From positions 115,599 to 179,598 of the forward strand of contig NIVC01002376.1 of assembly GCA_002269645.1 (NCBI GenBank): 64,000 nucleotides of DNA, in the 5' to 3' direction. The position numbers were made by a program, and so were the translations under genes. Positions 4,201 to 50,500 of this stretch are shown here, piece after piece (the stretch's first letter is position 1; the number at the start of each line of letters is the position of its first letter). The notes under the pieces are model-generated. The model had not been told where the DNA came from and made no database searches. It saw only the letters and a program-made list of their open reading frames with translations. The DNA comes from Macrostomum lignano. Its lineage: Eukaryota.

Positions 4201-7200
4201 ATGAATCCACCAAAGCCAAAGCAGCCTCGTAATAGCTGTATAACAGCATGGCTCTTACCAGCACCAGCCCAGGGGCCCAAGGCTACTGCTGGTCCTGCCC
4301 AGGCCACTGCTGCATGCACTGCGTCTGCGTCTATTGCTCCTGCTGCCCAGGCCACTGCATGCACTGCGTCTGCATCTGCATCTGCTGTCCAGGCCACTGC
4401 ATGCACTGCGTCTGCATCTGCATCTGCTGCCCAGGCCACTGCATGCACTGCGTCTGCGTCTGCATCTGCTGTCCAGGCCACTGCATGCACTGCGTCTGCG
4501 TCTGCATCTTCTGCCCAGGCCACTGCATGCACTGCGTCTGCATCTGCATCTGCTGCCCAGGCCACTGCATGCACTGCGTCTGCATCTGCATCTGCTGCCC
4601 AGGCCACTGCATGCACTGCGTCTGCATCTGCATCTGCTGCCCAGGCTACTGCATGCACTGCGTCTGCGTCTACTGCTCCTGCCCAGGCCACTGCATGCAC
4701 TGCGTCTGCATCTGCATCTGCTGCCCAGGCCACTGCATGCACTGCGTCTGCGTCTGCTGTTCCTGCCGAGGATCATTCAGTTTCAAAAGCTGGAAAAAGC
4801 TTTACAAAGTTTCAAAGCCGCTATTTGTTGATGTTTAACTGGCTCGAGTATGATGGGAAGGCAGACAAGGCTATTTGCCGCCTATGCAGAGCCTTTTCAC
4901 CAGCAACGGAGCAAATTTTTACGCCCGGAAAGGATGGGTGGCGCTTGCATGTGCTGAAAAGGCATGTTAAATGCCAGACACATCAGGCTGCACTCGCTGT
5001 ACCCAAGTCGCAAGCCAACTGGAAGAGTGCAGTCGAGGAGAACGTCCGCCGCGCTCGGCCTGAAGTGAAGTGTAAGTCAGTGGATTTTCTGCCATTCCTA
5101 TTGTTGAGACTTCTATTTTTAGATGTATATTTAATATTAAAAATATTAATGTACATACATATATGTGTATCTCTCTCTACCCTACCCCACCCTTATTAAA
5201 ACCAGGCCAGATGATGAACATCTTGTTCTGCCTCCAGAAGGAGCGGCCAATTTCATTCGCATCAGAGTTGCATACTCTGGTAAGAACGCAGCTTGAGCAA
5301 CTCACACGGCAGCCCGAATCACAGCCGAATCAGGCTGTGCCTGGCAGCGAGTCTGCAGCACCGGTTCGACCTGGCACTGACAGTGACACGGTTGACACCC
5401 CAGCCCCAGGTCATCATTCTGCACAAAGAAGCAACCCCTGCAACTTCATAATGTCAGCTCATCACTGCTCGAATTACGCAACATACCAGTTTGCTGCAGC
5501 TATGGACAGCTGGGTGAAGCAGGATGATGTCAAAACACTCCAGAAGGCTCCCTGTTTCAGTTTGCAGGTAAGTACTTAGTACCGGTATTGATACTGATTG
5601 AATTAGGATTGACTATTGATTACTAAATATAGGATTGTCTTATATGTTCCTAATCCTAACCCTCAGGTTGATGAGGTCACTGACCGTTCGATGGAAAAGT
5701 CACTCCTCATTATGGTCAACGTTGCCGATGTGAGCCAGGCTGGTGCAACTCAGCCTCTAAAAACGCTTCACTGGAAGCTGTGCGCTCTGGAGCGTGGAAC
5801 GGCCAATGACATAACGGAAGCAATTCAGCGTAGCTTCTCCAGTCGAGGTGTGAGCCTCAGAAAGTGCATACTTTTTGTGTCCGATGGTGCTGCTGTGATG
5901 TTGGGTCGCCATAACGGAGTAGCACGTCAGCTACAACGAGCCAGCTGCCCAATGCTGACGGAGTTGCACTGCGCAGCGCATCGGCACAACATATGCGTCC
6001 GTGACGCGTACGAGGCCTGTCAGGTTATAAGCACGGTTGATGACCAGCTGCACGGCCTTATCGCCTATCTGAGGACATCGAAAAATTTGAAGCTGCTAAA
6101 AAGACTCGGCCAAATTCTTCAGGAAGTAAGTCTTGGTTAAGATACAACCTCATTCAATGCGAATCCAGAGAAAAATATCAATCCCGACGGCATCACATAT
6201 TCCAATTACAGACATACACATCCATTCGATCCCTAATTATTTCTATGCAAAACTTTGAGAAAGTTACACAATCAATGGTTGTACAAAACCTCCAACTAAG
6301 TCAAGCCTAATCGCCCTAATGTCAAGCATTACTCACATGATGCCTCACTCTACCTGCAGGATTTTGTGCGCCCTGAGCGTTTTATCGACGTCAGGTGGCT
6401 TGGGCGCCACACAGCAGTCAGTTGTATTTTTCGCTCGTTGTCTGTTATAATGACTCTGCTCGAGTCAAATGCCACTTCGGATGTAGACAGCGGCGGTGCT
6501 AAAGCTGTTGCTCAAGGCCACCTGAAGACGGTCTGCAGCACAGGCTTTCTACTGACGCTGGCAGTTATGCATGACGTGCTGGGCATCATGGCGCACCTGA
6601 ACAAGGCTTTCCAGCAGTACGTTTGTATTTAATCCTGGTTCTTGTGCCACTTCCCACACCTAGCTCGTATAATAATGTTGTATCATTACTTCGTCTTTAA
6701 CCTCCTAGCAGCATCCTTACTTTCTCCCTTACATCCTCGACCTCACCTGATCAGGCACGGCTTGCATCCATTCGACCTGAGAAGCCGTGTCAAAGCCGCC
6801 CAAATTGAGCTGCAGTCCGTACTGCTGGACGACCGTGGGAAGCTTCGCAGAACTCCGTCCATGGAGCAATTGCAGGAACTCCTGGACCTGAACTTAGAAC
6901 TGGAACCATCGGATGTACCTGCTACTGACCAAATTGGTTCCAACCGACTGAACCGAGTTTCTGCGCGAACACGAGCCGAAATTGCAGCAGCTTGCTCAAC
7001 TTCAGTGTTGATAACCCCTATCGCTGACCAGCTGACTAACTTCGTGCATCAGTTAATTAAGAATTTGGCCGACCGGTTCCCTGATGTAAAACGATCAGAG
7101 CCAGAAATTCTACCTGAGGCAGAGCCAGGCTTTGGAGTGCACGCAATGGACACGGAGCCCGCGGATTCAGACAGCTGCAATACTCTGCCAGCTGTTGATG

Positions 7201-7637
7201 AGGACGTAGAGTCCGAAACAGACGACTTGCTGACTCATTTACGCATCTTCGATCCTGCAGAAATGCCGGTCTCGGGCCAAGGTGAAGCCTTTGCCAAGTA
7301 TGGCCATAGGAGCATCAAATGGCTTGGTCGTTTTTACCATGAAATTCTGGTTTCGGCTGCTGATCGCGAGCAGGACTTCGATACAGACGAACTCGAGGAA
7401 CAGCTGACATCAGAGTGGCGCAGTTTCTGCTTCAGTGTGCTATACTTCCGCAATAGCGAAACCTCTGACTGGCGTACTTTCCTGCTCGTGGCTGCACGAA
7501 ATTCTGCGGAGTGGCCACTCCTATCGTGTTTAACGAAAATTTTTCTAACTTTTACTGCGGAAAACGCCACTGTCGAGCGAGGCTTCTCGCTTCTCGCAAG
7601 GCTAAAGGGCACTAAATTCGGACTTCTTGAACTTTAG
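4201..7637 (+). CDS. ZNF862-like hAT transposase; exons about 4201-5071, 5206-5567, 5667-6125, 6360-6616, 6755-7637; C-terminus probably truncated
   Basis: TTF-type zinc finger (WLEY..CRLC..KRH...H), catalytic DEVTD, SDGAAVM, HCAAH, RW and ERGFS motifs; GT-AG introns phase-compatible by hand. Confidence 0.9.
4290..4760 (+). repeat. 42-bp coding tandem repeat (AQATACTASASASA) in the transposase N-terminus
   Basis: Seen directly; frame preserved. Confidence 0.9.
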
Positions 7638-8545
7638 TAGATAAAATAGTTGCAATTCTGATAGGATCAAAATTTTGTATCTATAGGGGTTTTTAATGGT
7701 GCTGATTTTAAATTTGAGCTTAATTTTTTTATAGCTTAAAGCCAACTACTGGGACATGGGGAATGGGGGTTTTAGGGTAGGGAGAATCTTCATGGGAATT
7801 GATTTTATCTACTTAAACTTCAATAGAGGCATGGGGGTCTATTAAAGATTAGATAGATAAATTTAGAGACTGAGGGTTCCAGAGTGGAAATGTAATGAAG
7901 CTTAAATAAAAACTTTCAGCAAGTAATCAAACACTTCCATTGAGAAAAATTATAATCTTATCAAAATAATTGATATCAGCAGCTATAATTACATTTCAGA
8001 ATAGAGAAGACAATGCAGATTAGTAGAAATTAAGTATAGGTAAACATTTAAAGAATGTACAGCTAGTCACAACCATGAGAGAACAATAGCAAATCAAAAG
8101 CAGGAGGCGAGGCCAGTGGCAAACCATGAGTCAGCATTTTTTAAAAACACTAATTTGATGTAGCACTCTCGGTGCACTATAATAAACTGAGTAAAGATGA
8201 ATTACTCGTAGAATAGACACTCCTTTTATTGGAGTTAAAAATCTAACCTCCTAAATGTTTTTTTACAATGAATTCATCAAAATTTTAGACAATATTTACC
8301 TTTGAGAGCCATGATTCTAAAAAAGTTTAATTTTCAAACATACAATTCTCCGAAACTGCTTACATCAAATTATCATTAATTACATAGGGGGATTAACAAA
8401 TTGAGCTCCTGTTAACTGTGACAGTAATTTTTTTGCAGTTTTCTTTGCTTTATTATCATTTTGGACAGCCTCTAAGACTCTGGCAAAAGTTTTAGAAAAA
8501 TTGGAAAATCAGAAGTATTTTACGTACCTAAAGTTCAAGAAGTCC
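7620..8545. mobile_element. Probable non-autonomous insertion bounded by an 18-bp inverted repeat
   Basis: GGACTTCTTGAACTTTAG (7620-7637) / CTAAAGTTCAAGAAGTCC (8528-8545); no TSD found. Confidence 0.5.
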
Positions 8546-9738
8546 CTAAATTCTGCTATTTTTGCAATAAAATCCCTTAGTTGGCTAAAAATCTACTCCA
8601 CTTTGGCATTACTATGGGGCATAGGGCAATACAAGTAGCGCTTGTATAAGCTTTATAAGTAAAAGGATTGGCTGGTATTTAAAATAGCTTCCTAGAAGCT
8701 AATTAATCAATGAATATAGTCATATAGTGGACAAGTTTTAGTAGAAGACTAGCAAGAATCATCTTAGTGGAGATGTACCTTTACTTTGATGCTATAAATT
8801 ATAGGTTTATAAGTTATAACATGATCATGATCCTGACCATTTTGCGGATGGTGGGGTGTACGCCAGAAAATTCCGGTGTACACTTGATTTCTGTGGCATA
8901 TACCAGCGTCCATTTCTTGGCTGTGTACAGTGTGGCATACTGGGTTTTTTTCGCTAGAGACAAGGTGCAAAATCGCACCTTGTGCTAAATTTCAAGGTGC
9001 GATTTTAAGGCTCAGAGTGCAATTTCTCTTGAGTCTTGTTTTAAGACAACTGGGAATGTATATTTTAATATCTTACATAAGGCTATAGCCATAGGTAGGG
9101 GTTCCAGTGAGGTTTTGAAACATTTTTTATTCTTGGATATTTTTAGGCAGCTAAGTAGATCTCTGCAACCAAAATCCAAAATGGCCTCACTTGTTAATTT
9201 CTGTCAAGGAATAAAAAGTTATAGCATTTTTAGTTGTAGAAAATTTTGTAATTCCTTATGGCATTTTTGCATTACGGCCTGTGACCTTTTTTGCGCAAAA
9301 AGTACAATTTTTCATATACTTTTATTTATAAATTTTTTGTCCCTTATCCAATTTTAATATGTTTGGTGTCATTTTTTTGCATTTTTTATATTTTTGTGGC
9401 CCTATTAGTCTTTTTAAAGACTAGAGGGCCTTGGCTAGTAGGCTTAGTTGGAGTCGGCTAGATATGCTGAAAATCATATGTGCAAATGTGTATTACATGT
9501 ATATATGTGCATTTTTACAATACATAGGTATTGTTCTTTTGAATATATATTTTTTAGGTATTTAGCATTTTTACCAAGATGTACAGAGCAAATTCTAATC
9601 AAATTTAACTGAATTTTCTTACTTTTTAGGCCTAGGCCAAGGCTAGGGACAGTCATTAGTTAGTATATTTCAGTCCATCTTGCTTACATGTATTGACATT
9701 ATAACTGCAGTCATATTACTCATACACCAATTTCAGCA

Positions 9739-10861
9739 ATGAGCAGTGCCAGTGATGAAAACCGGCCTCCAGATACCCCAGGGCCAGATCCAGTGCTGAG
9801 AGTGACAGTTGGGAAGGCATTGCAGTTAACCCAAAACTGCAAGGCCCCAGAGGCGATGCAGCACCTCATGCAGCATGTGGGTCTGCCTGCGAGTCATGTT
9901 GGCAGCTTGGCAACAAAGAATATCATGAAGAGGATAGCCAGGCTTCGCCAGCAGGCACGTGAGCTGCAACGCAGCCACTGCAGAGACCTGGCTGCAGGAA
10001 AGCAGTCAGAGTACCAGCAGTTGCTTGCTGGTGAGTTTCAGGTGACTCTGACTGATGAGTAAGTTAATGACTGCATTTGACATTTGGATTTGCTATTAGT
10101 ACTACCACTGCCTGTCTCTTAAAATCAATAATTAATTTGTTTAACAACCTGTGGTATTTTAGAGATCGTCCTGCCGAAGGAGAAGTCCACCATCCTCAAC
10201 TTCATTGCGGCTGGTGTCCGGCGCAGTGTCCCCCAGTTACGTACCCAACTGAAGGAGCTTCTGGGGATACTGCAGCAGCAGGATTCAGCATCGCATCAGT
10301 CCACATCCCAGGCCTCGAGCATTCAGCTGGACACAAGCTGGATTGCTACCCACTGAGGACAGAGCCCTCTGCATTCAACAGGCCATCGATGGCAAGCTGG
10401 GTGGCGCCGCGAAACACTCAACTGCAGTGCGGCCAGCTGGGCAAGTTGCTCGCGGTGGTGCCAGTCACCAAGGTGCCAGACGCCGAGGTGCCGGTCGCGC
10501 TGGTGCCTCTGTCACAAGCGCGGGAAGCAGCCGTGCAACCGCCCGCCCTAGCAAGAGAGCCGCAAGCCCAGATGCTTCAACCGATGGCGATGACCTCGAG
10601 GCCGCCGACCCTGCGCCGAGTCTCAGCAACTTGCTAGAGTTGGTGGGGCACTGCATAGAGATGCTTTTCGCCTATGCTGATGGAGAGGAGTGGGACGAGG
10701 GAGTCGTCGTGAAGCAGCTTCCTGCAGCGGCTCGCAGCAGAGACATTCTGGATTGGGAGTTTGTTGTTGTCTTTGATGACCATCCATCCAAGCAATTCAA
10801 GTACAACTTGTACAAGGACTTTCTTGCTGGGGACCTGCATATACTTTCAGATGATGAGTAG
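9739..10861 (+). pseudogene. Two-exon ORF (intron about 10031-10162) ending in a Spindlin/Ssty-like Tudor domain; disrupted by a stop or frameshifts near 10240-10340
   Basis: LVGHCIEMLF...W.EGVV...FVVVFDD....KYNLYKDFLAGDLHIL resembles the Spin-Ssty repeat (VG+.+EH.F...W.GMVL...Y.Y.LLDDY..GDL.I). Confidence 0.6.
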
Positions 10862-13800
10862 AGAGAGAGAGAGAGTTGGCAACCCCCTTCCCGGCTGATG
10901 GATTTCGTATCAGCATTAGTAATGACTATCCTGCAGTAGGCTTTTATTTGAGACTACAGGGACTGTTTTACAGCCATATATATGTTCCATGTATATATGT
11001 TGTATGCACACTTTAGCATTCTTGCTTTCTATATCCAATAACCATATTCATTGTAAGTATACAATGATACACTGCATTGACTGATCTGCTTGAATGTCGC
11101 CATGCTCCCCCGAGAACATCACAACTTTTTTGTAATTCGTAATTCATGTGTCCCTTTAAATTTGACACTGACAAGCAATTCAAATATTCCATGCCACCAT
11201 TGTCTACATAACAATTCACATATGTTCCATTAGACTTCAACTAAAGGGAGTTGGCGTCGCTGACCAAGCGAATGCTAGGGGTCGCTTGTTGGGATCGTCT
11301 TGTGCTAGGGTCTAAATATCCAGCGACTTTCCAACGGAAGCCTCCCTTGTTGACCCCCAAAAAAAACTTTATAAGTTTATATAACTATTTAAACCTTTCA
11401 ACGTTCCTATACATGCCCTCTTTGCATTCAGTTTCATTAAGGACATAATATTGATCGAAAAAAGCAAAATAAAAAAACAAAAAAAATCTGCAAATTTACC
11501 ATTTATCTACTACAAGTAGACGCGCATTTTTTGGCAGGTTAACTTAAATATTAACCTTGCGGCAAACTTTCATGCAATGGGACTTATACCATGTCATTCA
11601 GCATGGAAATCTGCATATTAAACATGTTTAATTTCCTCATCTCCGCATCAGAGGCTCAGCTGCCTTGCGGCAAGTCATCCGAGATGCCTCTTTTTGGCAA
11701 AATGGAGCAAAGGTTACCCGCATATCAAATTGAATTGTTTAAAATATGGCCTTTCATGACAACACAAAGAAAAATGTATTGAAAATTTTTAACTGACAGT
11801 AGAGGGGCCTTAGAAATTTTTTTTCATTTTTTTTATTGCAAAATTTGTGCTTTACTATATCCTTTATTCATTCCTTTCATTTAATTTGTTATTCCTAGCA
11901 CGCTTTAAGGTGATATTTCAATTGGCCATATGAACCCTCATTTTTACAATTGGCTTCATTCCATAGTCAGGAAGGTGTCCGTACGCCGGAATTTTCCGGC
12001 GTACATCAGCCCCCCCCCCAAAAAAATGGCGTACAGTTTCGCGTACACGCGGTCCGAAAAATGGCGTACAGAGTTCTTGGCGTACACAACACAGTTTTCG
12101 CATGCAAAAATCTGTCCAAAAATCGGCCTACAATATTTGCATGTGATTGGCGTAAGAACAAACGTTTAAAAAACCTGCAAACAACCCAATTACTTCGACA
12201 AAGTATTGTATATCGTTCAATTTTAGTGAATTGGTAAATCTATTTTCATCTTTAAAACGCTGAAATTACGTAAATTTTGAATCTGATTTATTGTTAACAA
12301 AACTTTACTAAAGTTTTGTGTAAGTCAGTTATTTATTTTAACTTATTAACTAATTCTGTACAATAATTACTTTAGTATTTTAGATTTCTTCACGTTACAA
12401 CAGATGACATACAGGTAAGGTAAGATTTAAGTTGCAAATTTCGCGCATTTGCAGTTTTATTTTATTACATTTGTTAGCAATTTCGTCGTCGAGTTCGTCT
12501 TCTTCAAGTTCGTTCTTCAGACCATTCAAATTGATCTGTTCTCTCTCCTGGATTTTTGCAACTATTATTATTGTATTTGTATATACTAATATACTGATTG
12601 CTTCGCTTGTTGTCTTGTCTTGTGTTGTGTAACTTGTGTGTAACTTTGTAAGCACAATCGAATCCACAAGGAAGGAAGTGAAATATAAATATTCAGTGTT
12701 GACTCGACTGTGTTGTCGTGTTGATATAGCCAGGCTCATCGGCTCAGAAACTTTAACCATACCATTGCAAGTTGCAACACCAATGGAAACTAGTGACACT
12801 GTCACTGTCACTGACACTGACACTGAGGACGAGGTCGAGGAGATGGAAGTTTCTTCTGATAATGTCAATGCTATTGATAAAGCTTTGGATTCAACTTCAA
12901 GCTCACTTAGCTCAGCTATTGATTCTAGTAAGTGTGGCCTGTTTGCTAATTGCCTGTTTTCAATATTCTTTTCTTATCTTTTATTATAAATTATAAGTTC
13001 TGAAGAAAATAAATTTTAGACAGAATATTAAACATTGAGCTAGGGACCAATATGAATAGCCTTGATTCTCAAATTTTGCTTTTAAATATATTATGCTAAT
13101 CAGCTAATGCAGCCATGCCCATAGCATACATGATACATACAGTACAGGCTACAGGCTACAGCCTTGCCTATACTTTTGTTAACATTGACAAGTCTAGTCA
13201 TTAAGTCTTAAGTCTAGTCATTCATTCATGATGATTCATGTTATTGTTATTGATTGTCAGATTCCGACAAGTAGGCCAGTTTTTATCCAATCCAAATCCA
13301 ATATATGTATATGTTCTATTTTAGTGTAGTGTAGTCAAACATCAATAAGTATAAAGTATGTATATTGTTTAATTTCACATTCTATTATTTACATGAGATC
13401 TGACTCTGACTCATACATTGATTTGATAGTGATTGATAGGTGATAGCTGATACTGCCATACTCATACTTAACTTTATTTTATTGTTGACTTATTATAAAT
13501 TTTTGACTTACTTTTCTTAGACAATACAGTTAGTTAATTAGTTTTGTATATATGTAGCAATGCAATCCAAAGCTGTAGGCTGTGCCTGTAGGTAGAATGT
13601 ATGTAGCATTCAAAATCAGAGTCATCAGACCAAGACCATTTTCATTATTACCATATTATATTAATCCCCGCCCTTTCTATCTATTCTATAGCAACATTAT
13701 TTTAAACCCCTTAAGTAGCCCCAATAAAACCCTTTCACTAAAACAGGTTTTTCGGCTGCTTCTACTTCATCAAAGGCAGCTGGTCCTAAGACAGGTCTTA

Positions 13801-14203
13801 AAGAAGGCTGGGGATTTTTTGCAACCCCAAATCAGCTGCAGCCTATTTCTAATTCTAACAATCGCAAGCGAAAGTCTGTTAGTAATTCTGGCCCAAGTCA
13901 GTTAGAAGCCAAGCAACCCAAAAGAGTAATTGCACAGGATGTGCACTACTGTTTGTCCTGCTTAAGGGCTGGTCGAAATTTGCGAAACTGCCGAACAGTC
14001 CGTGGTCTTCCACATGATCTTAATCGGCACTGTAAGAGTCAACACCAGGGGCGCAAAGGTGTTGGACATGCACCTCCTGATTTCGCTCGAAGAGATAACC
14101 AGGAGGTTCGAAGGCTGTTGAATGAGCGTGCCCTGCAAAATGTAGCTACTGTGAAAGACGAAGAGGACGACTTGAGTGCTGAGGTTGATCAGTCTGAACA
14201 GCA

Positions 14204-14736
14204 GCAGCAGCAGTCATCCGATCAGCAGCAGTCATCCGATCAGCAGCAGTCATCCGATCAGCAGCAGTCATCCGATCAGCAGCAGTCATCCGATCAGCAG
14301 CAGTCATCCGATCAGCAGCAGTCATCCGATCAGCAGCAGTCATCCGATCAGCAGCAGTCATCCGATCAGCAGCAGTCATCCGATCAGCAGCAGTCATCCG
14401 ATCAGCAGCAGTCATCCGATCAGCAGCAGTCATCCGATCAGCAGCAGTCATCCGATCAGCAGCAGTCATCCGATCAGCAGCAGTCATCCGATCAGCAGCA
14501 GTCATCCGATCAGCAGCAGTCATCCGATCAGCAGCAGTCATCCGATCAGCAGCAGTCATCCGATCAGCAGCAGTCATCCGATCAGCAGCAGTCATCCGAT
14601 CAGCAGCAGTCATCCGATCAGCAGCAGTCATCCGATCAGCAGCAGTCATCCGATCAGCAGCAGTCATCCGATCAGCAGCAGTCATCCGGTCAGCAGCAGT
14701 CATCCGGTCAGCAGCAGTCATCCGGTCAGCAGCAGC
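14204..14736 (+). repeat. 15-bp coding tandem repeat (QQSSD), about 35 near-identical copies
   Basis: CAGCAGTCATCCGAT units seen directly. Confidence 0.95.
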
Positions 14737-17024
14737 AGACAGACCTGCAGTGTCGTCTACAGTTGCGACTCGAAGCTGTTGATTCAGCACCAGCTCCAGA
14801 AAACATGGCTAAGAAGATCACTGCTCTGCAAAAGGCGTTCGAGTCACAGACGCAGGAGATTGTGCAGATGAAAAAACTGCTTGAAAATATATCCGTCAAT
14901 GCTGTTGCTACATCTAAATGTAGTAAGGGCAGCAATCAAGAAAATAAGTCCAAAATCGACCTCGGCAACGATGATGTGGCGGCCACAAATAGTTTCGCTG
15001 AGTTACTGCAGTTTGAGTTTTGTTCGCTCAAGTCGTGCGAGAATGGTGACTCGATTTTTAACTGCGTTCCCTGTGTCACGTTCCTCTGCAAGTCGAAACT
15101 GATGCCTACCAACTGTACAGCCGAGCAAATCTACAGCATTCTGTAAGTCGAATGTTTTTTATATGTACTGTATGTAGAGTCCGTTTAGACGGGATAGTCT
15201 TAAAGAAGTACTTAAGGTGTTAATGTACCGAGCTTTTCACTTTTCCAGGAACCCCACCACCACTGAAAAGAATAAGTCCTTCAGCAGAGGGCTACGACTT
15301 TCAGCCGAACGAGTCGCAGGTTTGCTAAGTGGTGTGGACGAGTTCTCCAAATTTCGCAATGAACTCGTAAACCACTGTTCGACAAGCAAGACCCACTATT
15401 CGGCTGTGAAGGACTACCGAACCGAAGTCGTACAACAGACGGCACAAGGCAAGGTTGTGCGCACCCTTCTCCGCTGTGCTATTGCGACAATTGAAATGGC
15501 TGCTGCGGGTTCGCATTACGAGACTCTAATGAGTCTGCTCGATGCGTCTGATTGTGAAGTTGGTCAGATTGGCCATGGCTTGTAAGTTTACCTGCAAACA
15601 TATCTATAAATAATTTTATTTAAATGCAATCAGATATACTTAATAAATAATAACTTTGTCATTTCACCTACCCTCCCTCCTTACACAGTGCATTCTGCAA
15701 AGAACTTTGGAAGTTATTAGACGCCTGCGTAAACGACGAAAGTGCAGAGTTTCTGCGGTGTCCTCTGCCTTCGACTGGACAGCCGCCTCTGCTGACCATC
15801 ACCTGCGACAAAAGCACCCCAGGCCGCACAACGAATCAGGCGGCACTCCTTCTAGCTCGCTGCGAAAATGGCGAAGCCGTAGCGATTCCTGCGGGTGCAC
15901 CTGCTGTGTACGACTCTGCAATGCAAGCAGATGGGGAAGCCCTGGCCAAAAGACTAATGCAGACACTTAAGGTAACCGTCACTAACGTATTATTTTTTGG
16001 ACGATTGAAGGGATTCTAACAGTTTTAAACTTTAAATTAGACGAGTGCTTAATTTCATCATTTTGAATCTATCAGGTGTTGAAGACGCCCACTGCAAGCA
16101 TCATGGGTATCGTCGCTGATGGCCAGTACCAAGCTGGCACATTCTGCCGCGCTATTCGGACCGAGCTCGGGGCCCCTGTCGATGACGTCGAAAAGATTCC
16201 TGTGATGTGGGATGCGGCACACTACTTGAATCTGGCCGTCACTGATGTTCGCGATGGACCTGATGGGGAGTCATTGCGCCGGTTTATAAAGCGAGCGAAT
16301 TTTTTTGCTACCTATTTCAGCCATGGTCGTGGTGAGGCAGCACTGAAAGAAGCGTCAGACGGTTCAGCTCGAGCGATGTCGCATTTCGCAGCCCAGCGTT
16401 TCACGAGCTCTGCAATCAAGTAAGTACCAGCTATTATCAATAAATAGTCTAATAAAAATGGTGATGAAAAGCGTAAATAAAAATTTATTTAATGTCCTCC
16501 CACTACGCTTCTTTTTTTAGACAGTGGTCCGCCATTGAGGCAAGTTACGCCGCTCTGCACACCGCATTTCGAGCAGAAAATCCGTGCTGCTCTGATGACG
16601 AAGAGTCGCAATATGCAATGTTCGGAAGCGACTTCGTTTTTGACTTGCTGTGCCTGCAGGACCTTTTTGGTCCACTAGTCTCCCTGATGGAAGTGGCTCA
16701 GAACCTCCAGTTGCCTCACTGGAAGGTTTCCGTGCTGGCCGATCGGGTAGCGAAGCATTTTGCTGATCGCTCAGAGGTTTTCCGAGTTGAGGATTACCCA
16801 CGACTGCAGGTAAATGATTTGGGCCTATATGTAAGGGCTTAAATTATATTTAAAGGGCTTAAATTTGCGCATTCATTTCTTTCCTACTTCACTTCAATTT
16901 TTACAGCCCTTCTATGAGTCCATCAAACCGGGAGGCTCATTCAAATCGGTCGAATTGATGGGCGGATGGCTTGTACTGCCGGACAAGCCCACGGTGACCG
17001 CTCGAGGCAACCAACGCACCTATA

Positions 17025-17886
17025 AGACTTAGAAATCTGAATTGAATTTAAGTGAGCGTTAGTTGGTAACTAAAACTAAAAATAGCAACAGCAGAAGGTG
17101 CGAGCAACCGAAAGGAGAATGATTAGACAAAATCCGCCCCCAGAGATCAACTATTCATTTCAGCGCAGGCCCGGTTCGGCATGACAGCAGCTGTGCCAAC
17201 GTGGAGCTGGCCGAGACCGGATCCACAGAGGCGCTGACGTGGAGCTGCCGGAGACCGGATCCGCAGCTGTGCTGACGTGGAATGGCCCGAGACCGGAACG
17301 CAGCTGTGCTGACATGGAGCTCCCGGAATCAACCCGGCCTACCCCGACCTGCAGCTGCCTGCATCGACCCAACCCAGCAGAAACTGGAGCCGCCCGGACC
17401 CGATCGGGAACGAGATCGAGAGGAGGCCGAGTCCGCACAAGAAGGCGGGATCGATGAAAGGAAAGGGGTTGGCGTGCCTGCCAACCAACTAGTTTAATGA
17501 CAATAACTGTACTAGACTCGAGGCTGCGACCTCACTCACCCCAAATTCCCATGCGTACTGTTGCTATGGTATTATCTCCCCCTCGGATCGAGGGGTTTTA
17601 AAAACACTATATATATCGGAGCGGAGCGCGGAAAAAGATTCCCTGCTCCGGTGATTATAGACTCACTTCGAGTTCCGTTTAGATAAACTAGAAAATCATT
17701 GTGTTTGTGTTCTTTCTCAAGTAGGATCAGCGATAACGATCTAGAGAGATCACTACGACCAGCCGAAATACTGAGCTTCGATAGTCGTTAGGAGTTATAG
17801 CCTTCAAGACTTTTAGACTGCAATAAACCGCTAGACAAACTATAGGAAAACTACAAGTGAAGAAGAAGAGACATAAACTTGAAGCA
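17025..17886. mobile_element. 862-bp insertion (retroelement/LTR-like fragment) inside a transposase exon
   Basis: CTATA duplicated at 17020-17024 and 17887-17891; removing it restores the frame TY|STGRPSSRVDW; contains a TATA-like run, AATAAA and short tandem repeats. Confidence 0.7.
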
Positions 17887-20509
17887 CTATAGCACCGGTA
17901 GGCCAAGCAGCAGGGTCGACTGGCAACTCCGAGAGTCCCAGGATATGGAGCGGGTAATTTTTAACTCTGAGTTTTAGCACCGCTACTGTGTAAAAGTATA
18001 AACTTCTGTCATGTCATGATTAGTGTATTAACGCACTTATATATATTTATAATTCTCTCCAGGACCTAGTCCAGTTGGCTTCAAGCCTGCACCGCTCCTT
18101 TCTTGCGCGATTGGAGAAATGCTGCGTCAGGGATCCGTCAATTGTCCTGGATGCAGCATCTGCCGTTAGCCTGTTGACTGCCGAGGACATCAAAGAGGCA
18201 GTCGAGAATGCAACTCATGCCGTTGAGATGAAGCACCTTGTCCGCCTTGCTGAAAAGCACGAGCATCTCGCACCGCACGTGAAGTCGTCCCTATCACGGA
18301 AGTATTTGGAGGCTTTTATCACGACTATTCACGAGGCATTCATCTCAGGCGACGGCCGAGATAACTGGCTCACACCTGCTGTACAGGGTCGCATTATTAA
18401 GGTCTCTGCGGAACCCCGCAAGTCAGGCGATCTGGCGCTTCGACTGCGACTGACTATAGAGCCAAGTGAGTCTGTCTGCGCCACGCTTAACGAGTCAGCA
18501 GTATACGCGGCTTTTTACAAGGACCCTCGGGTTTATTCCCACGCTGGTCAAGCCACGTGTCTGTTGCTCGACTTTGCTCTTCACCGCGGCGGCACAGGTG
18601 AGCATGAGCTAGTCTGAAAAGTTTTAGGTATGCAGAATTTTAATACTTTGTAATTATGGAAACTTTCGTTTTTTTAGAAGCGATTGTCGAATCCTACTAC
18701 GTGACAATGCGCTCGCAGCAAAAAATCGGTGGTCAGCTCAACGACACGCTCAAGGTAAGAACGAAGCTACGCTGGATGCTGCCGCCAGTGGGTACCAGTG
18801 CCAATGAGCGACTCTTAGGACGAGCTGTGAAACTTTATTACACTGGCGACAGTCAAAGAAGCTTTCGGCAACACCGTGGACCACTCTTCTTCGACCCCAA
18901 AGCCCGCGCTCGCAAGAAGTATGAATCTAGCAAAGTGATTGATCGGCGCCGGGAACAGGGTAGTCGGTGTCCGTTCGTCGGAGCCGATAAGTCTCTGTCA
19001 GAATCGTTGTCTGAAAACAAATGAACTTTTTAATGGGTAATTAATACGTAAATTTTAAATCTGTAAATTGCAGCATTTTTTGGGTCCTCAATTTTGGCGT
19101 ACGCTTTTTTGGGCTATTCAATTTTGGCGTACGTCAAAAAGCGCTTTTTTAGGGCTTTTCAATTTTGGCGTACACAGCATTTTTTCTTAATTTTCATTCC
19201 GGCATACACTGGACACCTTCCTGACTATGGGCTTCATTTCGTATTTGTGACACTTTTTGTGGTAACTTTCGACACGTATAACTTTTTTCTTATGTCATAC
19301 ATTTTGTGACACATAGAAGGTTCAACACATTTTGGAAAGTATAATTTGTCTAGTTTCTGTTATAATTTATAATTTGTAATTTAGTACCTTTTTTCTTCAT
19401 TCTACGTAGGACACATTTTCATGTTTTTCATGTTTTGGGACATATTTCACAAACCTCATTGGAACCCCTACCATAGGCTATATCGCCTATATGACTTAAT
19501 AGGATTTGAAGAGTTATTTTGTTTCATATTTTAAGGCAATGCATGAAAAATAGCTTAAGCATGGTTAAGCCTTTAAAGAAAAATGGTTATAAGACCGCAC
19601 CTAAACTGCATCTACTTTTTTAATTTCAGGGTGCGACTTTAAAATTTAGGGTGCATACGCACACTCTGCACACAAAAAACCCTGGTGGTATACGGTGTCG
19701 TGTATGTGACTAGCATAGAAATTAATATAAATAATTTTTTGTGCTTTTTCTGTGTTAAGTTATTTCAAAAACCATTTTTTCTGCTACTATTTTCTCATAT
19801 ATCAATCATTTTAATTACCGGAGTTGTCATGACAATCATCATGTCGTTATCAATTTTTTGTATTTTAAATTTAAATTTAAACATTCGCTGATTTTTTTAC
19901 CATTTTTAAGTTGGCGTACATTTAAAATCTGTTGGCGTACAATTGAAAATTTAATAAAAATGTGTCCGGCGTACACAGAAAACCTTCCGCAATATGGGAT
20001 CCTGATTCCTGACTATGATAAAGTTGGGGCCTTGGGCCAAAATTAATAAATACATAACATAGGCCTTACAAAATAATCAGTCTAGACTAAAGAGTCTAAC
20101 AGTTAATTATAATTTTAATATTAGTTAAATAAATTAGTGCTATCTACAAAAGATAACACTGTATATAATCATATAATGAAACTAAAAAATGCAACAGGCA
20201 TTAGTACTCACCTCGTCTCTTGCATATTGTTAAGTCAAGATGTTATACTTATATGTTTAATGCATCAGGATCTGGCATGTCAAAAAAATAGTGAGGTGGG
20301 CCTGGTGGGGGCGGAGAAAAAACAAGATTTAGAAGTAGTAGTTGGTAAGTTTGGCTCAGGCAAAAAGCCTCTTTGGCCAATATAAGTCGATGTATTTAAT
20401 TCTTCTTCAAAAGGTTGGATACTTTTAAATGATGAATGACATACAAGTTACGAATTGATATTTGTATTAAATATGGTATTTGAAAGAGCGTCTGGACTTT
20501 TTTACGGTA

Positions 20510-26113: not shown

Positions 26114-29800
<3,687 letters not shown>

Positions 29801-29925
29801 TTAACAGGTTGGTTCGCCGGCGGCGGATTATTTATTTGGTTGCTGGTGGCAGTGTCATCATTGGGCTGGCCGAAGGTTCGCCCTCAGCGCCCCGCTCCTA
29901 GTTTGGCACGGGGTTGGGAACGGCA

Positions 29926-31194
<1,269 letters not shown>

Positions 31195-39234: not shown

Positions 39235-41550
39235 TCAAGATCGCAGACTGACGAACACTCGTCCCACAGACTGACGAACATCAATTTGTTCGACAAAGGA
39301 TGTTACAGAAGGCGTCTTCATCAGCTTCACCACCATAGCAACGGTCTCCTCGTAACGGCAGATCACGGTCCTGTGGCAGTGCATAAGCTGCATGAGCAGA
39401 TCTTTATCCTGACAGAACTGAAGCACCAGAAGCAGTTCTTGAACATCACTGTCATCCTGCTGTAGATACTGCTTGAACCATTTCATAGCCAGTGACTCGC
39501 TGACAATGTTCAGCTGGAGACACAGACATCTCGCTAGTGCCATAAAGTTGATGTAGAACCATTCGTTGTACCCAATGACGACAGGAAAGTGGCTGGCAAC
39601 TGTGTCTGGCAGGAAACCACTTAGATTGGGTCTTTCGCTATAGCGGAAGCAAAACTTCCAAGCATTGTCGGTGGTTTCAAGGTGTCGCCAAACTTCGGCA
39701 GCTGAACGGGCCGACCTCGGCGCACCGTTTGACACTCGGTAAACATTCTGAGTGTCGCAAAATTGCATCAGCGTTTTAATGGCGGAATTGTTTCTGCCAA
39801 TCTTCAGTAAAGCCAGGGCGGTCAGGCAAAGCCGGGCTGTCTTGGCACTGTTCGGCAGACTCTTGATCAGCTCCCAGAACTCAGCTGAAACTCCGTGGTC
39901 ATCGAGCATTGAAAATAGTGCTCTCACAGTGTCGTACAGCTCGTGATATGCCGGACACCGTGAAGTCGCAATGGGTCTCGGCGTCAGATTTGGAATGATT
40001 AGGAACGGGTGAAAGGTGAAGACGGCCTCGGCAGGTAGAGGACGCAGAGTTGACTCGAACTGACTGAGTAGGGTGGGCAGCTGGTCAATCGCAGCCCTGA
40101 TGCATTTCACTAGCGCTTGTTTCTTGGCGTGTCCAGACTTCAAGTACAGCCAAGCGTCCCGCAGGAAGAAGTGACGCACGCAGCGGTGCGGGTGCAAGCC
40201 CTGATCTTCCATGGAGCAGCAGAGCCTTTGAAGCCCGGCTCTGACCAAGGACACCAGTTGGCTCGGCTGCCAATTCTCTGGCGGAGTCTCGTCCAACAGG
40301 TAGAATATCAGCGTCTTTGCGTGGTAAGTTTTTAAGCCGACCATTTTCGGGGAGATGATCCGTTTGATAATGTACTTGAGCATGACGAACACCTGGCCCT
40401 GCTCGCTAGTCAGGCTGCGCATGAGCCTTCGCTCCAGGAAGTTCGTGCTGACCCGAAGGCGCTGGTCACCTCGGCCTGGAGGGGCCGCCGCCACGAGGTG
40501 ACACGGGCAGGTGGGCAGTGCTCGGCGTAAAGAATCCAGCACTTGGAGTCGGATTTGCGTTTTGTAATTCTTCTTGAGAACGGCTATTGGAGGGTAACGG
40601 CAGCAGGGGAAGGCCCAGACTCGATCGCTCGCCGGTCTGAGCACTGAACCGTCCCAGGCCTGAGCTGGGTTCGATGCTGAAATAATGCGAGAATGCTTTT
40701 TGTTTTTTACCTATTGCGTATCTTAGATGAAATTTTTTAATTCTAGAAAAGGCATTTGACCTGCCCTGGCATCAATTAAATCAATGCAACAACATGGAGT
40801 GAGGGTGATTTATACTCAGCAACACAAGGCCAAAAGTTTTGCGTGCCATCGGTGATTCAGAGTCCGAGTGCGTCATGGGGGAATTGGTGTTCAATTGAAG
40901 TGACCGTCTAGGTCTCCAGACAGAGCACATCACCAGCACAGAGCGTGCAACACTACCTGAGGTTGAAGGTCAATGCCGCTTCACGCCCTGTGTGAGCGGT
41001 AGCGTGCTCAGGGGTCAGTGGAATCGGTCTGCGTACGCAACCGTGTGCTCGGGGTGTACGTACCCAGAGCCTTGTGGAATAATAGCAAGCCGGCTTCTTG
41101 TGAGACCTCGATTTCTTTCTTGAAAAACGTCCATCAAAATCCTCGTCACTCACCTGCGCCAGTGCAAATGACGTGTCCATCTTCGTAGTCGACAGTTTCC
41201 TCGGACGACTCTACTACTCTGCATTGGCAGCGTCCGCGGATGTGAAACAGCCGGTTCCGCAAAATCTCGGTGATGTCAATGTCGGAGTCGAGGTCCGTGC
41301 GGCCGCTCGTGCAGGTGAGGCTGTTGCCCCAGCCCTCCGAGTAGCTGCCTACAATGTTGGTGAAATATTCATCTGAGCGGCGTCGTAAAATGCTCTGCAG
41401 AACTTCGGAGACGGCAACTTGCAGGGCGGCTCGATCGGAGACAAAACCGGCAGCTTGCAGGGAAGCATTCAGCTTGGCGCTGAGCACCGAATCGCTGCCA
41501 ATGGGTTCAAGATTGGTGCACAGTGATTGTTTCTTCTGAGCGATGAACAA
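39235..41550 (-). CDS. Mab21/cGAS-like receptor (cGLR) nucleotidyltransferase; exons 41154-41550 and 39235-40676
   Basis: VGSYSEG...DSDIDI NTase motif, third acidic residue in PASDRV, LRVSTNFLERRLMRSL and GLKTYHAKT Mab21 motifs; phase-1 GT-AG intron 40677-41153. Confidence 0.88.
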
Positions 41551-41675
41551 CTGAGATTGGTATCAGTGGTGCGACTTTGTGAGGCTACTATAGGATGTCA
41601 GGGGGGGGTTGTGGTCTTTCACAAGCTCCAACCTTCGTAATAATTAAAGCGTATTGACCTATTTTAAAACGACAA

Positions 41676-42536
41676 TCACCTGGGAACATGTCCCACGCTC
41701 AGCATCGCGTTGCAGTGCCCGTTAACGCGGTGGTCAGTTCCATTGGCTGAGCCAGACAGGCGCTGACTGAGCAGCAAGTCCACCAGGATCTCGTGACCGA
41801 ACCAGCCAGCAACCTCGGCCGCTGTTACGCCGCTGTTGTCCGCCTCGTCCGACCGGCAGCCCTCGGCAAGCAGCAGTTTGGCGACTTCAACGCGACCCAT
41901 CGAAGCTGCCGCATGCAGCGGCGACCAGCCGGTCGAGTCTCTGCTATTGAGCTCCGCGCCGGCCGCGATCAGGGCCGACACGGCGCTGACGTGACCGAAC
42001 TGAGCAGCGACGTGAAGCGGTGTCCGACCGTCTACGTCCGGGAGGTTCGGGTCCGCAACGGCGTGTCTGGTCAGCTCTGTCAGCACCTCGGCGTGTCCGA
42101 ACTTGGCAGCCGCGTGCGCCGGCGTCCAGCCGGTGTCTCGCCGACTCAGACTGCAGTCAGCGCCGTCCGCTGCCAGTAGGCGTCGAACCACATCAGCGTG
42201 GCCACATTCAGCGGCTACAAAGATCGGCGTCATGCCGTCTTTGTCCTGCACAGAGGAGCTGGCTTGCGACATCACCAAGAGTCGGACGGAATCGGCGTGA
42301 CCGTACCGGCAGGCGAGGTGCAGCGGAGTCCAGCCGCCCAGCTTCTGACTGTCAACTTGAGCCTGCGACTCAACCAGCAGCTGCACCACAAGCGTGTGGC
42401 CTCGGCTGGACGCGCGGTGAAGTGCTGACCGATTGCTGGCATCGAGGGAGTCAACTGAGAGTCTCGATTGCAGGCTTCGCTTCACATCGAACAGGCGGCC
42501 GTCTCGAGCCGCTCTGAGAAGTTCCAGCGTCGTCAT
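41676..42536 (-). CDS. Ankyrin-repeat ORF (about 7-8 repeats), possibly the first exon of the cGLR
   Basis: Repeated G.TPLH.AA..GH...V..LL units. Confidence 0.93.
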   Translation of the reverse strand: MTTLELLRAARDGRLFDVKRSLQSRLSVDSLDASNRSALHRASSRGHTLVVQLLVESQAQVDSQKLGGWTPLHLACRYGHADSVRLLVMSQASSSVQDKDGMTPIFVAAECGHADVVRRLLAADGADCSLSRRDTGWTPAHAAAKFGHAEVLTELTRHAVADPNLPDVDGRTPLHVAAQFGHVSAVSALIAAGAELNSRDSTGWSPLHAAASMGRVEVAKLLLAEGCRSDEADNSGVTAAEVAGWFGHEILVDLLLSQRLSGSANGTDHRVNGHCNAMLSVGHVPR

Positions 42537-47500: not shown

Positions 47501-50500
47501 ACTTAAGTGTCGGAGTTGTGCCACTTTGAGTGTCGGAGTTGTGCCACTTTGAGTGTCGGAGTTGTGCCACTTTGAGTGTCGGAGTTGTGCCACTTTGAGT
47601 GTCGGAGTTGTGCCAATTTGAGTGTCGGAGCTGTGTCACTTTGAGTGTCGGAGTTGTGCCACTTTGAGTGTCGGAGTTGTGCCACTTTGAGTGTCGGAGC
47701 TGTGTAACTTTGAGTGTCGGAGTTGTGCCACTTTGAGTGTCTGAGTTGTGCCACTTTGAGTGTCGGAGTTGTGCCAATTTGAGTGTCGGAGCTGTGTCAC
47801 TTTGAGTGTCGGAGTTGTGCCACTTTGAGTGTCGGAGTTGTGCCACTCTGAGTGTCGGAGTTGTGTCACTTTAAGTGTCGGAGTTGTGCCACTTTGAGTG
47901 TCGGAGTTGTGCCACTTTAAGTGTCGGAGTTGTGCCACTTTAAGTGTCGGAGTTGTGTCACTTTCCGTGATCAAGGATGCAACGCAGGCCGAATACTGTT
48001 TAATCAATTGAATAGTAATAAAGAGGAACAAATTCGCACCTGCTCGCAGGTCGCACCGCAGCAAGTCCAATCAATCGCCGCACACGGCAAGTGAGGACCA
48101 GAAGCAGCTGCAGCAGCAACGGCAGCCAGTCGGCAGTTTCGCCAGCTCCCGGCAGAAGCGAGAAGAGATTCGGGCCGCCTATTCCGACGATGAGACTCGA
48201 CGGTCGATGGAGCGGCAATGGGCGGCTGAGGACGCCAGGCTGGAGAGGCGGAGAGCCATTCGGTTGAACCAGGTGGGGTTCCGGTTTGATTCTGTTGTCG
48301 TGATTCACACCTATAAAGGGCCAACCCCCCTGCACAGAAAGTGTACATGCCTTACGATTAGAAAGTCAGGGCCGGTGTACACCCTGTCAGAGTCGGAGTT
48401 GCCTGCGTACACCGCCCCGCAGAATCGCGCCTCCGAGCCCAGCAAAGAGAGCAAACGTCGTTTTGAAGAGGCCGAAGCCGCCTACAAGCCTGCGGCGGGC
48501 GGCGCCGAGGACTTGTTCCGTCGGCAGCGCGAGCTCAAGATGGAGCGCTGCCTTCGCAGGCTGGAGGCTGAGCTCCAGCTCGCCCGAGCGGCGGAGGCCG
48601 AGCGACAGGCCGCTGAGGCTGAGAAGCGACGTCGGCGGGACGCTGACATGGCCGACATTCAGCGACGACACGCCGCCAATCTGAGGCGTATCGAGATGAT
48701 TAAGAGGCCGCCAAAATTGCTGAGATATCCGAGAAAGGCAAGAGACAGGTCCAGCTTCTTCTCAGAGTCTGACGGTGAGTTTGAGCTCATTAACCCTCGA
48801 ACGTTGGGGAAAACAATTGTCGGTTTATTATATTTGGGGTCCAATGGACCCCTCTGAGTTGATGCATGTTAACAATGCTTTATTGATTATTTATTGTTCA
48901 AAGCAAAAAACTACCAATACAATGGCGAACGTAATACATTAGTCGCATATTATCTCAAGAACATAGCAACTGATTCAGGTACTTTCTAAATGAAATTAGG
49001 CAATGAAGCTGAGAGTACTGATTAGTATTTGCTAATTACTAATTATTGTAACTGCAGTGTAACTACATGTATAATGAATAATGTCTTGCAATTCTACGAA
49101 TATATTGGAACACGAAGGATAAAGCAGAATTTGTCAGTAAATAGCACACGAAAAGAATTATCTCACTCTGCAGGCTCCCCCATGCATTCGAGGCAGACTG
49201 ACTGCAGGTGCCCGAGCAACAGTACCGTTGGCAGGTAGTGCAGCGTGTGCGAGTTTTGCGATCAGCAGAGCGGCTACACATGTGGCATCTTCCCTTTGGC
49301 ACTGATGCAACTGGGCGCTGAGGATGATTCTGACGTGCTCCTCTCTGGCCAGGCTGTTGCTTCAGCAGTGCCATTCCAAGTGCTCTCAGAAACAGCCTTC
49401 TTCGATGGGGCACTGCACCGTAGCTGTCTGGGAAGACAGCCTGGTGGAGGTAATAGGCGTTAAGGCATGCAATGTTTAGCACATTGCAAAACACGGCTAC
49501 ATGCCATCGTCGTGACTTGTACTTCACTGAGTAGCACATCGTCATCTGGTCCATCAAGTCCGTGCCTCCTTTAGTCTTATTGTAGTCCAGAATTGCTTGC
49601 GGCTTTCTTGTTGCGTTGTTAGACACCGCGGGACTTCTGTGCTGGCTAGAGAGTAGTAGTACAAGCTTATTGGGTTTCGCCTTGTAAGCAAGCAGTTGGA
49701 TCTGATCTTCAGTTGTGTAAACAAACTCAGTTGAGTACAGCTCACGTCCTTGATGGTTTCGCATCTCCAGCGGCACTTCCCGTCTGTGCAGCCGTATTGA
49801 ACCTAGCAGCGACATATTCCTTTGCAGTAAATATCTTGCTAGTGCTAGAGAGCAGAAGAAATTGTCGACGGTCACTCCAATTCCTGATCCTTGTAACCCT
49901 TCCGTCAACTTCAAAACGACGTGCTCACCAAGGCTTGCCTCACGCTCTTCCTCGCGGCCAACATACATATTGATATTCCAGCAGTACCCAGTAGCCGCAT
50001 CGTTTAGGCACCAGAACTTCAGCCCATACTTGGCAGGCTTCTTTGGCATGTACTGTATGTAGCTGCATCTTCCTCTATAGGGAAACAGCTGTTCGTCTAC
50101 AGTAACAGCTTCATTAGGAAAGTAACTCTTCTGTGAGTTCTGGACAAGTCCGTCAAGCAGCAACCTCACAGCGGCAAGCTTATCTCTTTGCAGTCGCGCA
50201 TTTCGAGTTTCGCGGTTGTCAAATCGCAGAAATCGGCGAATAGTCTTGAAGCGCGTCAAAGACATGGAGTTCTTGAAAACCTTTCTTCCGAATTCCTCAC
50301 TCCAGAGCTCATCGATGCTCTCCATGCTTCCTTTGAATACTCCGCGAAGAATGTTTAGGCCAATGAAGGCATTGATTTCCTCTCTGGTAGTTGGATTCCA
50401 AGCATTTCCAAGAACTCTCCTAGCTTCGCGGTTGGTCTCTATCACAATTGTGTCAACCATGTCATTGTCAAAGATGACGTGGAAAGCCGACTCTTCATCA

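Follow-up and report, generated by a model that had tools for sequence, protein, structure and literature searches.

The stretch of Macrostomum lignano DNA considered here, 64,000 nucleotides of contig NIVC01002376.1 (positions 115,599 to 179,598, hereafter called the window), carries one copy of a cut-and-paste DNA transposon that we designate S. The copy occupies positions 9096-19470 and measures 3,097 bp once a nested 7.3-kb element is subtracted, and it contains at 9739-10861, on the forward (+) strand, a broken reading frame whose last part resembles the Tudor-like repeats of the Spindlins. Sequence comparison shows that this frame is what is left of the N- and C-terminal ends of a transposase whose middle was deleted. 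We thus read S as a non-autonomous internal-deletion derivative that was later frameshifted, and the intact transposase of its family as a protein that ends in a Tudor domain, and we give this reading a probability of roughly 0.78. The deletion would have begun inside exon 1 and ended in the last intron, taking away some 800 codons with the presumed DDE region and leaving the N-terminal ~100 residues adjoining the last exon. That exon appears to encode a conserved helical motif, an Arg/Gly (RG)-rich linker and a single Spin/Ssty Tudor domain, which a later 1-nt frameshift would have cut off from the rest of the frame.

The frame at 9739-10861 is not one continuous spliced open reading frame (ORF). 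Direct reading places an ATG at 9739 and, just upstream of it, the sequence TTTCAG (9730-9735). As this acceptor-like hexamer was not seen in the M. lignano copy of the family, an intron in the 5' untranslated region is unproven. A GT..AG gap extends over 10031-10162, with the donor CTG/GTGAGT (10030/10031) and the acceptor tattttag/AG (10162/10163), and joining 9739-10030 to position 10163 onward keeps the frame (phase 1). The joined frame of exons 1 and 2 stops at the TGA at 10354-10356, which gives a product of 161 amino acids if the predicted splicing takes place, and the unspliced reading of exon 1 stops at the TAA at 10060-10062, after 107 amino acids. The Tudor-like end (10613-10858, followed by the stop codon TAG at 10859-10861) lies in frame +1, where no ATG precedes the domain. 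Of the spliced ORF proposed in an earlier note on this DNA, the ATG and the TTTCAG were found again, together with an in-frame GT..AG join, and its continuity to the end of the Tudor domain was not, given the TGA at 10354-10356 and the change of frame.

The break can be placed rather precisely. Homology to relatives runs in frame 0 to ~10329, ending ...SSIQL, and is found again in frame +1 from ~10343, where LLPTEDRALCIQQAIDGKL matches LLDARERKERVRTAIADRL. Two relatives, a metagenome ORF (P0002) and an M. lignano genomic copy (L003), are continuous across this zone. A second intron that would mend the frame was considered and rejected, as the GT..AG pairs, all of which were enumerated, lack both a canonical donor and a pyrimidine tract. 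Because no canonical intron restores the frame and because the relatives read straight through, a 1-nt frameshift from frame 0 to frame +1 is placed at ~10330-10342. Frame +1 then comprises a low-complexity linker rich in Arg, Gly, Ala and Ser (10343-10612) and the single Spin/Ssty-like Tudor domain of 82 amino acids (10613-10861, including the stop codon). Because of the frameshift the S copy cannot make the Tudor part, and it could make at most the N-terminal peptide, of 107 amino acids if unspliced or 161 if spliced. A tblastn search of the window found no second copy of the ORF.

The origin of the two halves was established by comparison with proteins of the same family. Pfam has no family for the conceptual protein of the window, which also matched nothing in a word-indexed search among 5.8 billion proteins. 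HMMER, run in full on 1.84 billion representatives, retrieved nine relatives. Three of them are large M. lignano proteins, P0003 (1,039 amino acids), P0006 (1,092) and P0008 (1,317), which match residues 96-216 of the window protein, i.e., exon 2, near their own C-termini. The remaining six are shorter proteins or fragments with a C-terminal Tudor domain, from M. lignano and from metagenome contigs; among them, P0002 is an uninterrupted ORF of 399 amino acids in which the C-terminal third of the transposase is followed by an RG-rich linker and then by the Tudor domain. Two scans of metagenomes, one with an alignment of the Tudor domains and one with an alignment of the full-length proteins, yielded no further loci. 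At the other end, exon 1 of the window matches the N-termini of P0003 and P0006, both by tblastn and in an N-terminal alignment. The remnant of the transposase exon 1 occupies 9739-10044 and corresponds to an N-terminal domain (about amino acids 1-102) that can be aligned to the N-terminal ends of P0003, P0006 and P0011.

What lies between these two ends in the full-length proteins has gone from the window. A profile built from six full-length M. lignano proteins (A4) matches the whole window at its positions 7-91 (E 3.6e-7) and 900-957 (E 2.8e-14), and weakly at 982-1013, and nowhere else; A4 positions 92-899 have no match anywhere in the window. Because A4 matches only the two ends, the window copy lacks about 800 residues, the presumed DDE core among them, in agreement with the statement of the earlier note that the ORF has no such core. 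That note had also proposed to see whether longer copies have a transposase core between the two parts; the M. lignano proteins that match both exon 1 and exon 2 at their ends do have a putative core there, judging from their motifs.

The position of the junction follows from the exon boundaries. Exon 2 of the window begins exactly where the last exon begins in M. lignano, at residue 926 of P0006, after the intron at 9536-9692 of the genomic locus L001. The start of this former last exon (10163-10356, frame 0) encodes the conserved motif IVLPKEKSTILNFIAAGVRRSVPQLRTQLKELLGIL, and its product is 50-63% identical to amino acids 927-982 of P0006 and 932-972 of P0003. The N-terminal homology, for its part, passes the GT donor and reaches 10044, AGEFQV aligning with AREFEPP, KGDLDVP and ESKFVPP, and the predicted donor is formed by codons that happen to read GGT GAG. 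Because the homology extends past the donor inside the former exon 1, the “intron” at 10031-10162 is taken to be a deletion junction with a fortuitous donor. The segment 10045-10162 would then hold the junction and the 3' end of the former last intron, terminating in the acceptor tattttag.

The boundaries of S are those of a mobile element of the same family. A 7-bp target-site duplication, CCATAGG, is present at 9089-9095 on the left and at 19471-19477 on the right, the identical 7-mer directly adjoining both terminal inverted repeats (TIRs). The left TIR (9096-9112, + strand) reads TAGGGGTTCCAGTGAGG, and its likeness to the right end continues to ~9124; the right TIR (19454-19470) reads TAGGGGTTCCAATGAGG on the minus strand, with one mismatch to the left one. 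There are exactly two matches to TAGGGGTTCCAGTGAGG in the window, in inverted orientation, for 0.07 expected, and the TIRs are of the same type as those of the M. lignano elements, TAGG(C/G)TGTCCAGTGAG. The copy has thus retained both TIRs and the duplication, with the same termini as its full-length relatives, and has lost the catalytic region. Its 5' non-coding part (9113-9738, + strand) is AT-rich, with a GC fraction of 0.31 and a ratio of observed to expected CpG of 0.19. The 3' non-coding part (+ strand) extends from 10862 to 11960, where it meets the nested insertion, and its last 215 bp resume beyond it, at 19239-19453.

The nested transposon, designated G, lies outside the S gene at 11961-19230. 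It is 7,270 bp long, with perfect TIRs of 20 bp (CCATAGTCAGGAAGGTGTCC) and subterminal repeats of GGCGTAC, and is flanked by an 8-bp duplication, GCTTCATT, at 11953-11960 and 19231-19238. Since S is depleted in CpG (observed/expected ratios of 0.19-0.61) while G is not (0.93), S is considered to be the older of the two. By the same ratio G looks young; Pfam gives no match in it, and its ORF pieces contain hAT-like motifs, namely ITCDKSTPG at 15654-16016 and IVADGQY...WDAAHYLNLAV at 16067-16420. An 18-nt minisatellite of 29.5 units lies inside its ORF at 13941-15146.

Other candidate ends were discarded. The GGCGTAC-rich inverted repeats at 8840-8881 and 11981-12022 were candidates for the ends of S; such GGCGTAC-repeat ends beside the ORF belong to other elements, and the M. 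lignano TIR pointed to 9096 and 19470 as the true ends. The pair 11961/19230 is that of the separate nested element, which has its own duplication. Additional ends of the GGCGTAC-repeat family are found at 8820-8945, where the repeats have decayed to GGTGTAC and GGCATAC, and at 19913-20017, where the end terminates in TTCCTGACTATG. S appears to be inserted inside a short member of this family.

The relatives in M. lignano show that the family is multicopy and was recently active, and a few environmental contigs carry members too. P0006 has two loci with unrelated surroundings, one next to a PARG gene and the other within a kinase gene. These loci, L001 and L002, have in common a unit of 7,305 bp with 99.9% identity, bounded by TAGGCTGTCCAGTGAG and CTCACTGGACAGTCTA and flanked by the 7-bp repeats CCTATAA in L001 and GTATAAT in L002; these two copies are therefore recent. 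In the third locus, L003, the copy measures 6,560 bp and its 16-bp TIRs, TAGGGTGTCCAGTGAG, are perfect; its conceptual ORF has a single frame break. Its last exon, its RG-rich linker and its Tudor domain form one frame, which ends ...LHVLSDDE followed by the stop codon, and its Tudor domain is 59% identical to that of the window. Because exon, linker and domain share a single frame in L003, the Tudor domain is attributed to the transposase itself. The proteins whose two ends match the halves of the window frame comprise ~1,040-1,090 amino acids and are encoded within elements of 6.6-7.3 kb that have 16-bp TIRs of the type TAGG(C/G)TGTCCAGTGAG. Adjoining the 6,560-bp copy, at 15477-17484 of L003 and inside an M. 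lignano DnaJ gene, there is also a short element of 2,008 bp with the same type of TIR (TAGGGACTCCAGTGAG) and a perfect 7-bp duplication, TTAAAAG.

Together, profile A4, the exon alignments and the in-frame Tudor domain of L003 bear out one of the two possibilities that the earlier note had raised, that of an N- and C-terminal remnant of a deleted transposase with a C-terminal reader domain. S itself is, in all likelihood, an inert relic, mobile only with transposase provided in trans by a full-length relative, and at best before the nested insertion.

By sequence profile and by predicted fold, the C-terminal domain of the family is Spindlin-like. Searched alone against the PDB, the domain of the window matched only Spindlins, with E values of 0.46-1.1. 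With a profile of eight, then nine, family members, the 17 best matches were to repeat 2 of Spindlin-1 to -4 (E 1.3e-4 to 1.8e-3), and the first match outside the Spindlins came at E 0.15-0.5. AlphaFold2 gave a poor model from the single sequence (pLDDT 56); from an alignment of eight sequences, it predicted a five-strand barrel with one short helix (pLDDT 85.4). When this model was compared with the PDB by Foldseek, the 44 best matches were all Spindlin chains (probability 1.00, E 2e-4 to 8e-3, TM-score 0.63-0.71), and beyond them came other Tudor-like folds such as SAWADEE. The Spin-Ssty model of Pfam matched none of the eight family members. The resemblance of the C-terminal end to a Spin/Ssty repeat, which the earlier note had proposed to check on the last 75 amino acids by profile or structure prediction, came out over the last 82 amino acids with the PDB family profile and the predicted fold, both of which specify repeat 2, and did not with the Pfam model.

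The aromatic cage positions appear to be kept in most of the family. In SPIN1, the aromatic cage for trimethylated lysine 4 of histone H3 (H3K4me3) consists of F141, W151, Y170 and Y177 (PMC3967050). In the HMMER alignment these residues correspond to F19, W27, F54 and F62 of the window domain. Among the nine members W27 is invariant, positions 19 and 54 are always aromatic, and position 62 is aromatic in six; the window copy retains all the Tudor positions that are invariant in the family. The order of the strands is also that of Spindlin repeat 2, and the C-terminal motif D(Y/F)xxGDLxI(L/M) is common to both. From the Spindlins it differs in four respects. Spindlins have three repeats packed into one globular unit, whereas the window protein and all its relatives have a single one, at the very C-terminus; the domain of the S family also contains an extra loop of the type PAAARSRDILD, forms the C-terminal end of a transposase, with an RG-rich linker in front of it, and falls below detection by the Pfam Spin-Ssty model. 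The linker always precedes the domain, at 10343-10612 in the window (for example RGRGRGRGKGHQREGGRGRGRGRG), at ~9980-10060 in L001, at ~12000-12150 in L003, and in P0002. RG repeats are classic methyl-arginine ligands of Tudor domains, and the linker could thus be a self-ligand of the domain that follows it.

In the intact transposase, a Tudor domain with its aromatic cage would bind a histone tail methylated in the manner of H3K4me3. Through such binding the transposase would be anchored at marked chromatin and its landing sites would be biased, as chromodomains do for chromoviral integrases. Tethering to methylated histone tails with biased integration is, most plausibly, the role of the domain in the intact family, at slightly less than even odds. 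Self-association through the RG-rich linker and interference with the host's recognition of young elements are the alternatives. We only tentatively entertain a broader proposal, that an undescribed transposase lineage has acquired, or donated, a single Spin/Ssty repeat with a working cage behind an RG-rich linker, that it reads H3K4me3-type marks, and that it thereby steers insertion or competes with a host recognition of the SPIN1 type linked to PIWI-interacting RNAs (piRNAs).

It is also possible, if rather doubtful, that the C-terminal barrel is a generic SH3/Tudor-like fold with another role, such as oligomerization, the binding of its own RG linker or of other methyl-arginine ligands, or the binding of nucleic acid. 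The single repeat in place of the integrated triple repeat of the Spindlins would fit such a role, as would a 7-residue insertion between strands 2 and 3, the constant presence of the RG-rich linker, the non-aromatic residue found at the fourth cage position in three of nine members, and the silence of Pfam. The best matches in both sequence and fold, however, are exclusively to Spindlin repeat 2, which is the H3K4me3 pocket, and in the window copy, as in the majority of members, each of the four cage positions has an aromatic residue, which favors a histone-reading domain.

The superfamily to which the S transposase belongs is less clear than its domain organization. A perfect 7-bp duplication abuts the TAG...CTA ends in four of five insertions (CCATAGG in the window, CCTATAA, GTATAAT and TTAAAAG), the fifth being ambiguous, whereas the target-site duplication of hAT elements is 8 bp. 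The short TIRs that begin with TAG fit the hAT start YAG/YARNG, both in the window (TAGGGGTTCCAGTGAGG) and in the M. lignano elements of the type TAGG(C/G)TGTCCAGTGAG. In the full-length M. lignano proteins, motifs read by eye include D385 (DATSKKG), then D469 (TDRHVVNK) 84 residues on, C505xxH508 (FCGMHVIVNLA) after a further 36, and RGNRAY after another 88. The block APKDNVAxERxF lies 324 residues after D469, a spacing identical to that between D248 and E572 of the hAT transposase Hermes, and in our own reading the local motif APKDNVAxERxF...R resembles the hAT block SERxFS. In Hermes, H268 is part of a CxxH motif, and an insertion domain lies between the aspartates and the glutamate (PMC4763223); CxxH has been found in the hAT, P, Kolobok, MuDR and Dada superfamilies (PMC3706591).

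In other respects the S family departs from hAT elements such as Hermes, Ac and Charlie/Buster. In addition to its 7-bp duplication, it has no BED finger, and the positions equivalent to W182 and W319 of Hermes are not occupied by Trp. Pfam searches with whole proteins and with excised DD and C-terminal segments revealed no transposase family and no Dimer_Tnp_hAT domain (IPR008906), and the PDB gave no match to Hermes or to any transposase; profile searches of the PDB with the full-length and N-terminal alignments returned only coiled-coil noise. Comparison by hhalign with the window's own hAT-like ORFs gave probabilities below 1%, and a search with these ORFs, run for the building of a hAT profile, found nothing at E<=1e-5. 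The sequence features suggest that S is a cut-and-paste element whose ends resemble those of hAT and whose transposase falls in the CxxH group. The hAT type assigned to it in the earlier note is unproven: the TIRs speak for it, and against it are the length of the duplication, 7 bp, and the failure of Pfam, the PDB and hhalign to give any link to a hAT transposase.

Three other explanations concern the S copy itself. Truncated P-element (KP) products repress transposition by binding transposon ends or the full-length transposase, and the N-terminal peptide of S, of 107 or 161 residues, might likewise be a KP- or Ds-like regulator that damps transposition, the Tudor domain being irrelevant in this copy. 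The conservation of the N-terminal domain across the family and the intact ATG are in keeping with such a function. We nevertheless regard it as unlikely, since the N-terminal domain matches nothing in Pfam or the PDB and the coiled-coil region that follows it in the full-length proteins is deleted in S.

The other possibility raised in the earlier note, that of an accessory gene, is very unlikely. The short ORF would in that case be functional within a non-autonomous element, its N-terminal domain being joined to a Tudor domain for chromatin targeting or anti-silencing. The deletion does happen to permit an in-frame GT..AG join, all family-invariant Tudor positions are kept, and neither frame segment contains internal stops. 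Yet the frameshift at ~10330-10342 parts the two halves, both of which are the ends of a full-length transposase, and the donor lies inside former coding sequence. There is moreover a single copy in the window, and S is depleted in CpG and split by the later 7.3-kb insertion. Lastly, that the ORF is a captured fragment of a host gene, or a host gene amid transposon debris, is hardly credible: the surroundings are rich in transposable elements and the word-indexed search found no annotated homologue, but the relatives are multicopy and bounded by the same type of TIR, and the Tudor domain is in frame with the transposase body.

Several points weigh against the interpretation of S as the deleted and frameshifted derivative of a Tudor-bearing transposase. 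The window holds only one S copy, so that a full-length partner in the genome is presumptive and the frameshift may be a sequencing error. Splicing across 10031-10162 is a prediction, the catalytic nature of the large protein is deduced from its motifs, and histone binding and a bias in insertion sites are extrapolated from sequence and model. As for the domain, the Spin-Ssty model of Pfam stays silent on the window copy even at E<=10, and the profile matches in the PDB have modest E values (1e-4) and identities of 22-28%. Finally, in L001 the Tudor domain (10097-10390, identical in L002) is out of frame by -1 relative to the upstream exon. An enumeration of GT..AG pairs in L001 found no canonical intron to account for this break, which is independent of the +1 shift of the window. 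Because L001 and L002 were recently copied with the Tudor domain out of frame, the domain is not required in cis for spread.

As a deletion derivative, S has well-known counterparts. Like maize Ds with respect to Ac, and Drosophila KP with respect to P, it has kept its ends and its duplication, has lost the catalytic middle, and has a residual frame in which N- and C-terminal parts are fused. It differs from them in that the residual frame is broken by a frameshift, the element is split by a nested insertion, and no partner is seen within the 64 kb. As for the reader domain, chromoviral (Ty3/gypsy) and Polinton-type integrases carry their own C-terminal reader of histone marks, a chromodomain. 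The S family would share with them the concept of a recombinase with its own C-terminal histone-mark reader, whereas the class of element, the enzyme and the fold of the reader all differ, and targeting by the S family is a conjecture.

Built-in histone readers are well known on the integrases of retroelements, and the principle is therefore not new. The type of domain, the class of element and the uncatalogued transposase are new, and the window copy is ordinary debris. Full-text searches across 8.3 million papers turned up no account of a DNA transposase with a Spin/Ssty domain, and a full-text search yielded nothing on the S family in M. lignano. As a dead relic the S copy is of little import itself, and its interest is that it reveals a transposase family with its own Spindlin-type reader. 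If the domain does read H3K4me3, the family would provide a natural chromatin-guided DNA transposase, relevant to the choice of target sites and to vector design. The background invoked in the earlier note, that SPIN1 reads H3K4me3 and acts in piRNA-directed silencing, is found in the literature (PMC3967050, PMC11499256); in particular, the SPIN1 of mammalian hosts marks young transposons, which are then methylated under the direction of piRNAs (PMC11499256). Host and transposon would then employ the same reader fold in their conflict.

The remainder of the window is rich in repeats, with minisatellites, a long interspersed nuclear element (LINE), piggyBac and hAT-like genes. Upstream of S, a fragmented hAT-like gene (4201-7637, + strand) encodes a finger that Pfam assigns to zf-C17orf113 (E 1.6e-7), the CxxH motif LHCAAHRHN and, near its end, ATVERGFSLL; a 42-nt minisatellite occupies 4295-4757 in its 5' part, and an 18-nt perfect inverted repeat is present at 7620-7637 and 8528-8545. 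On the minus strand, a LINE-type element (26781-31044) combines a reverse-transcriptase ORF of 780 amino acids with an upstream ORF of 372, and an uninterrupted ORF at 49063-50871 encodes a piggyBac-type transposase of 602 amino acids (DDE_Tnp_1_7, E 5.9e-78). Also on that strand, at 39235-42536, a Mab-21-like ORF (Mab-21_C, E 2.3e-6) lies downstream of an ankyrin-repeat-like ORF of 286 amino acids, and the two may form one host gene. Minisatellites are unusually common across the whole window, and among those of 21-23 nt there is, at 62983-63426 (+ strand), an exon that in our own reading resembles phosphoglycerate kinase.

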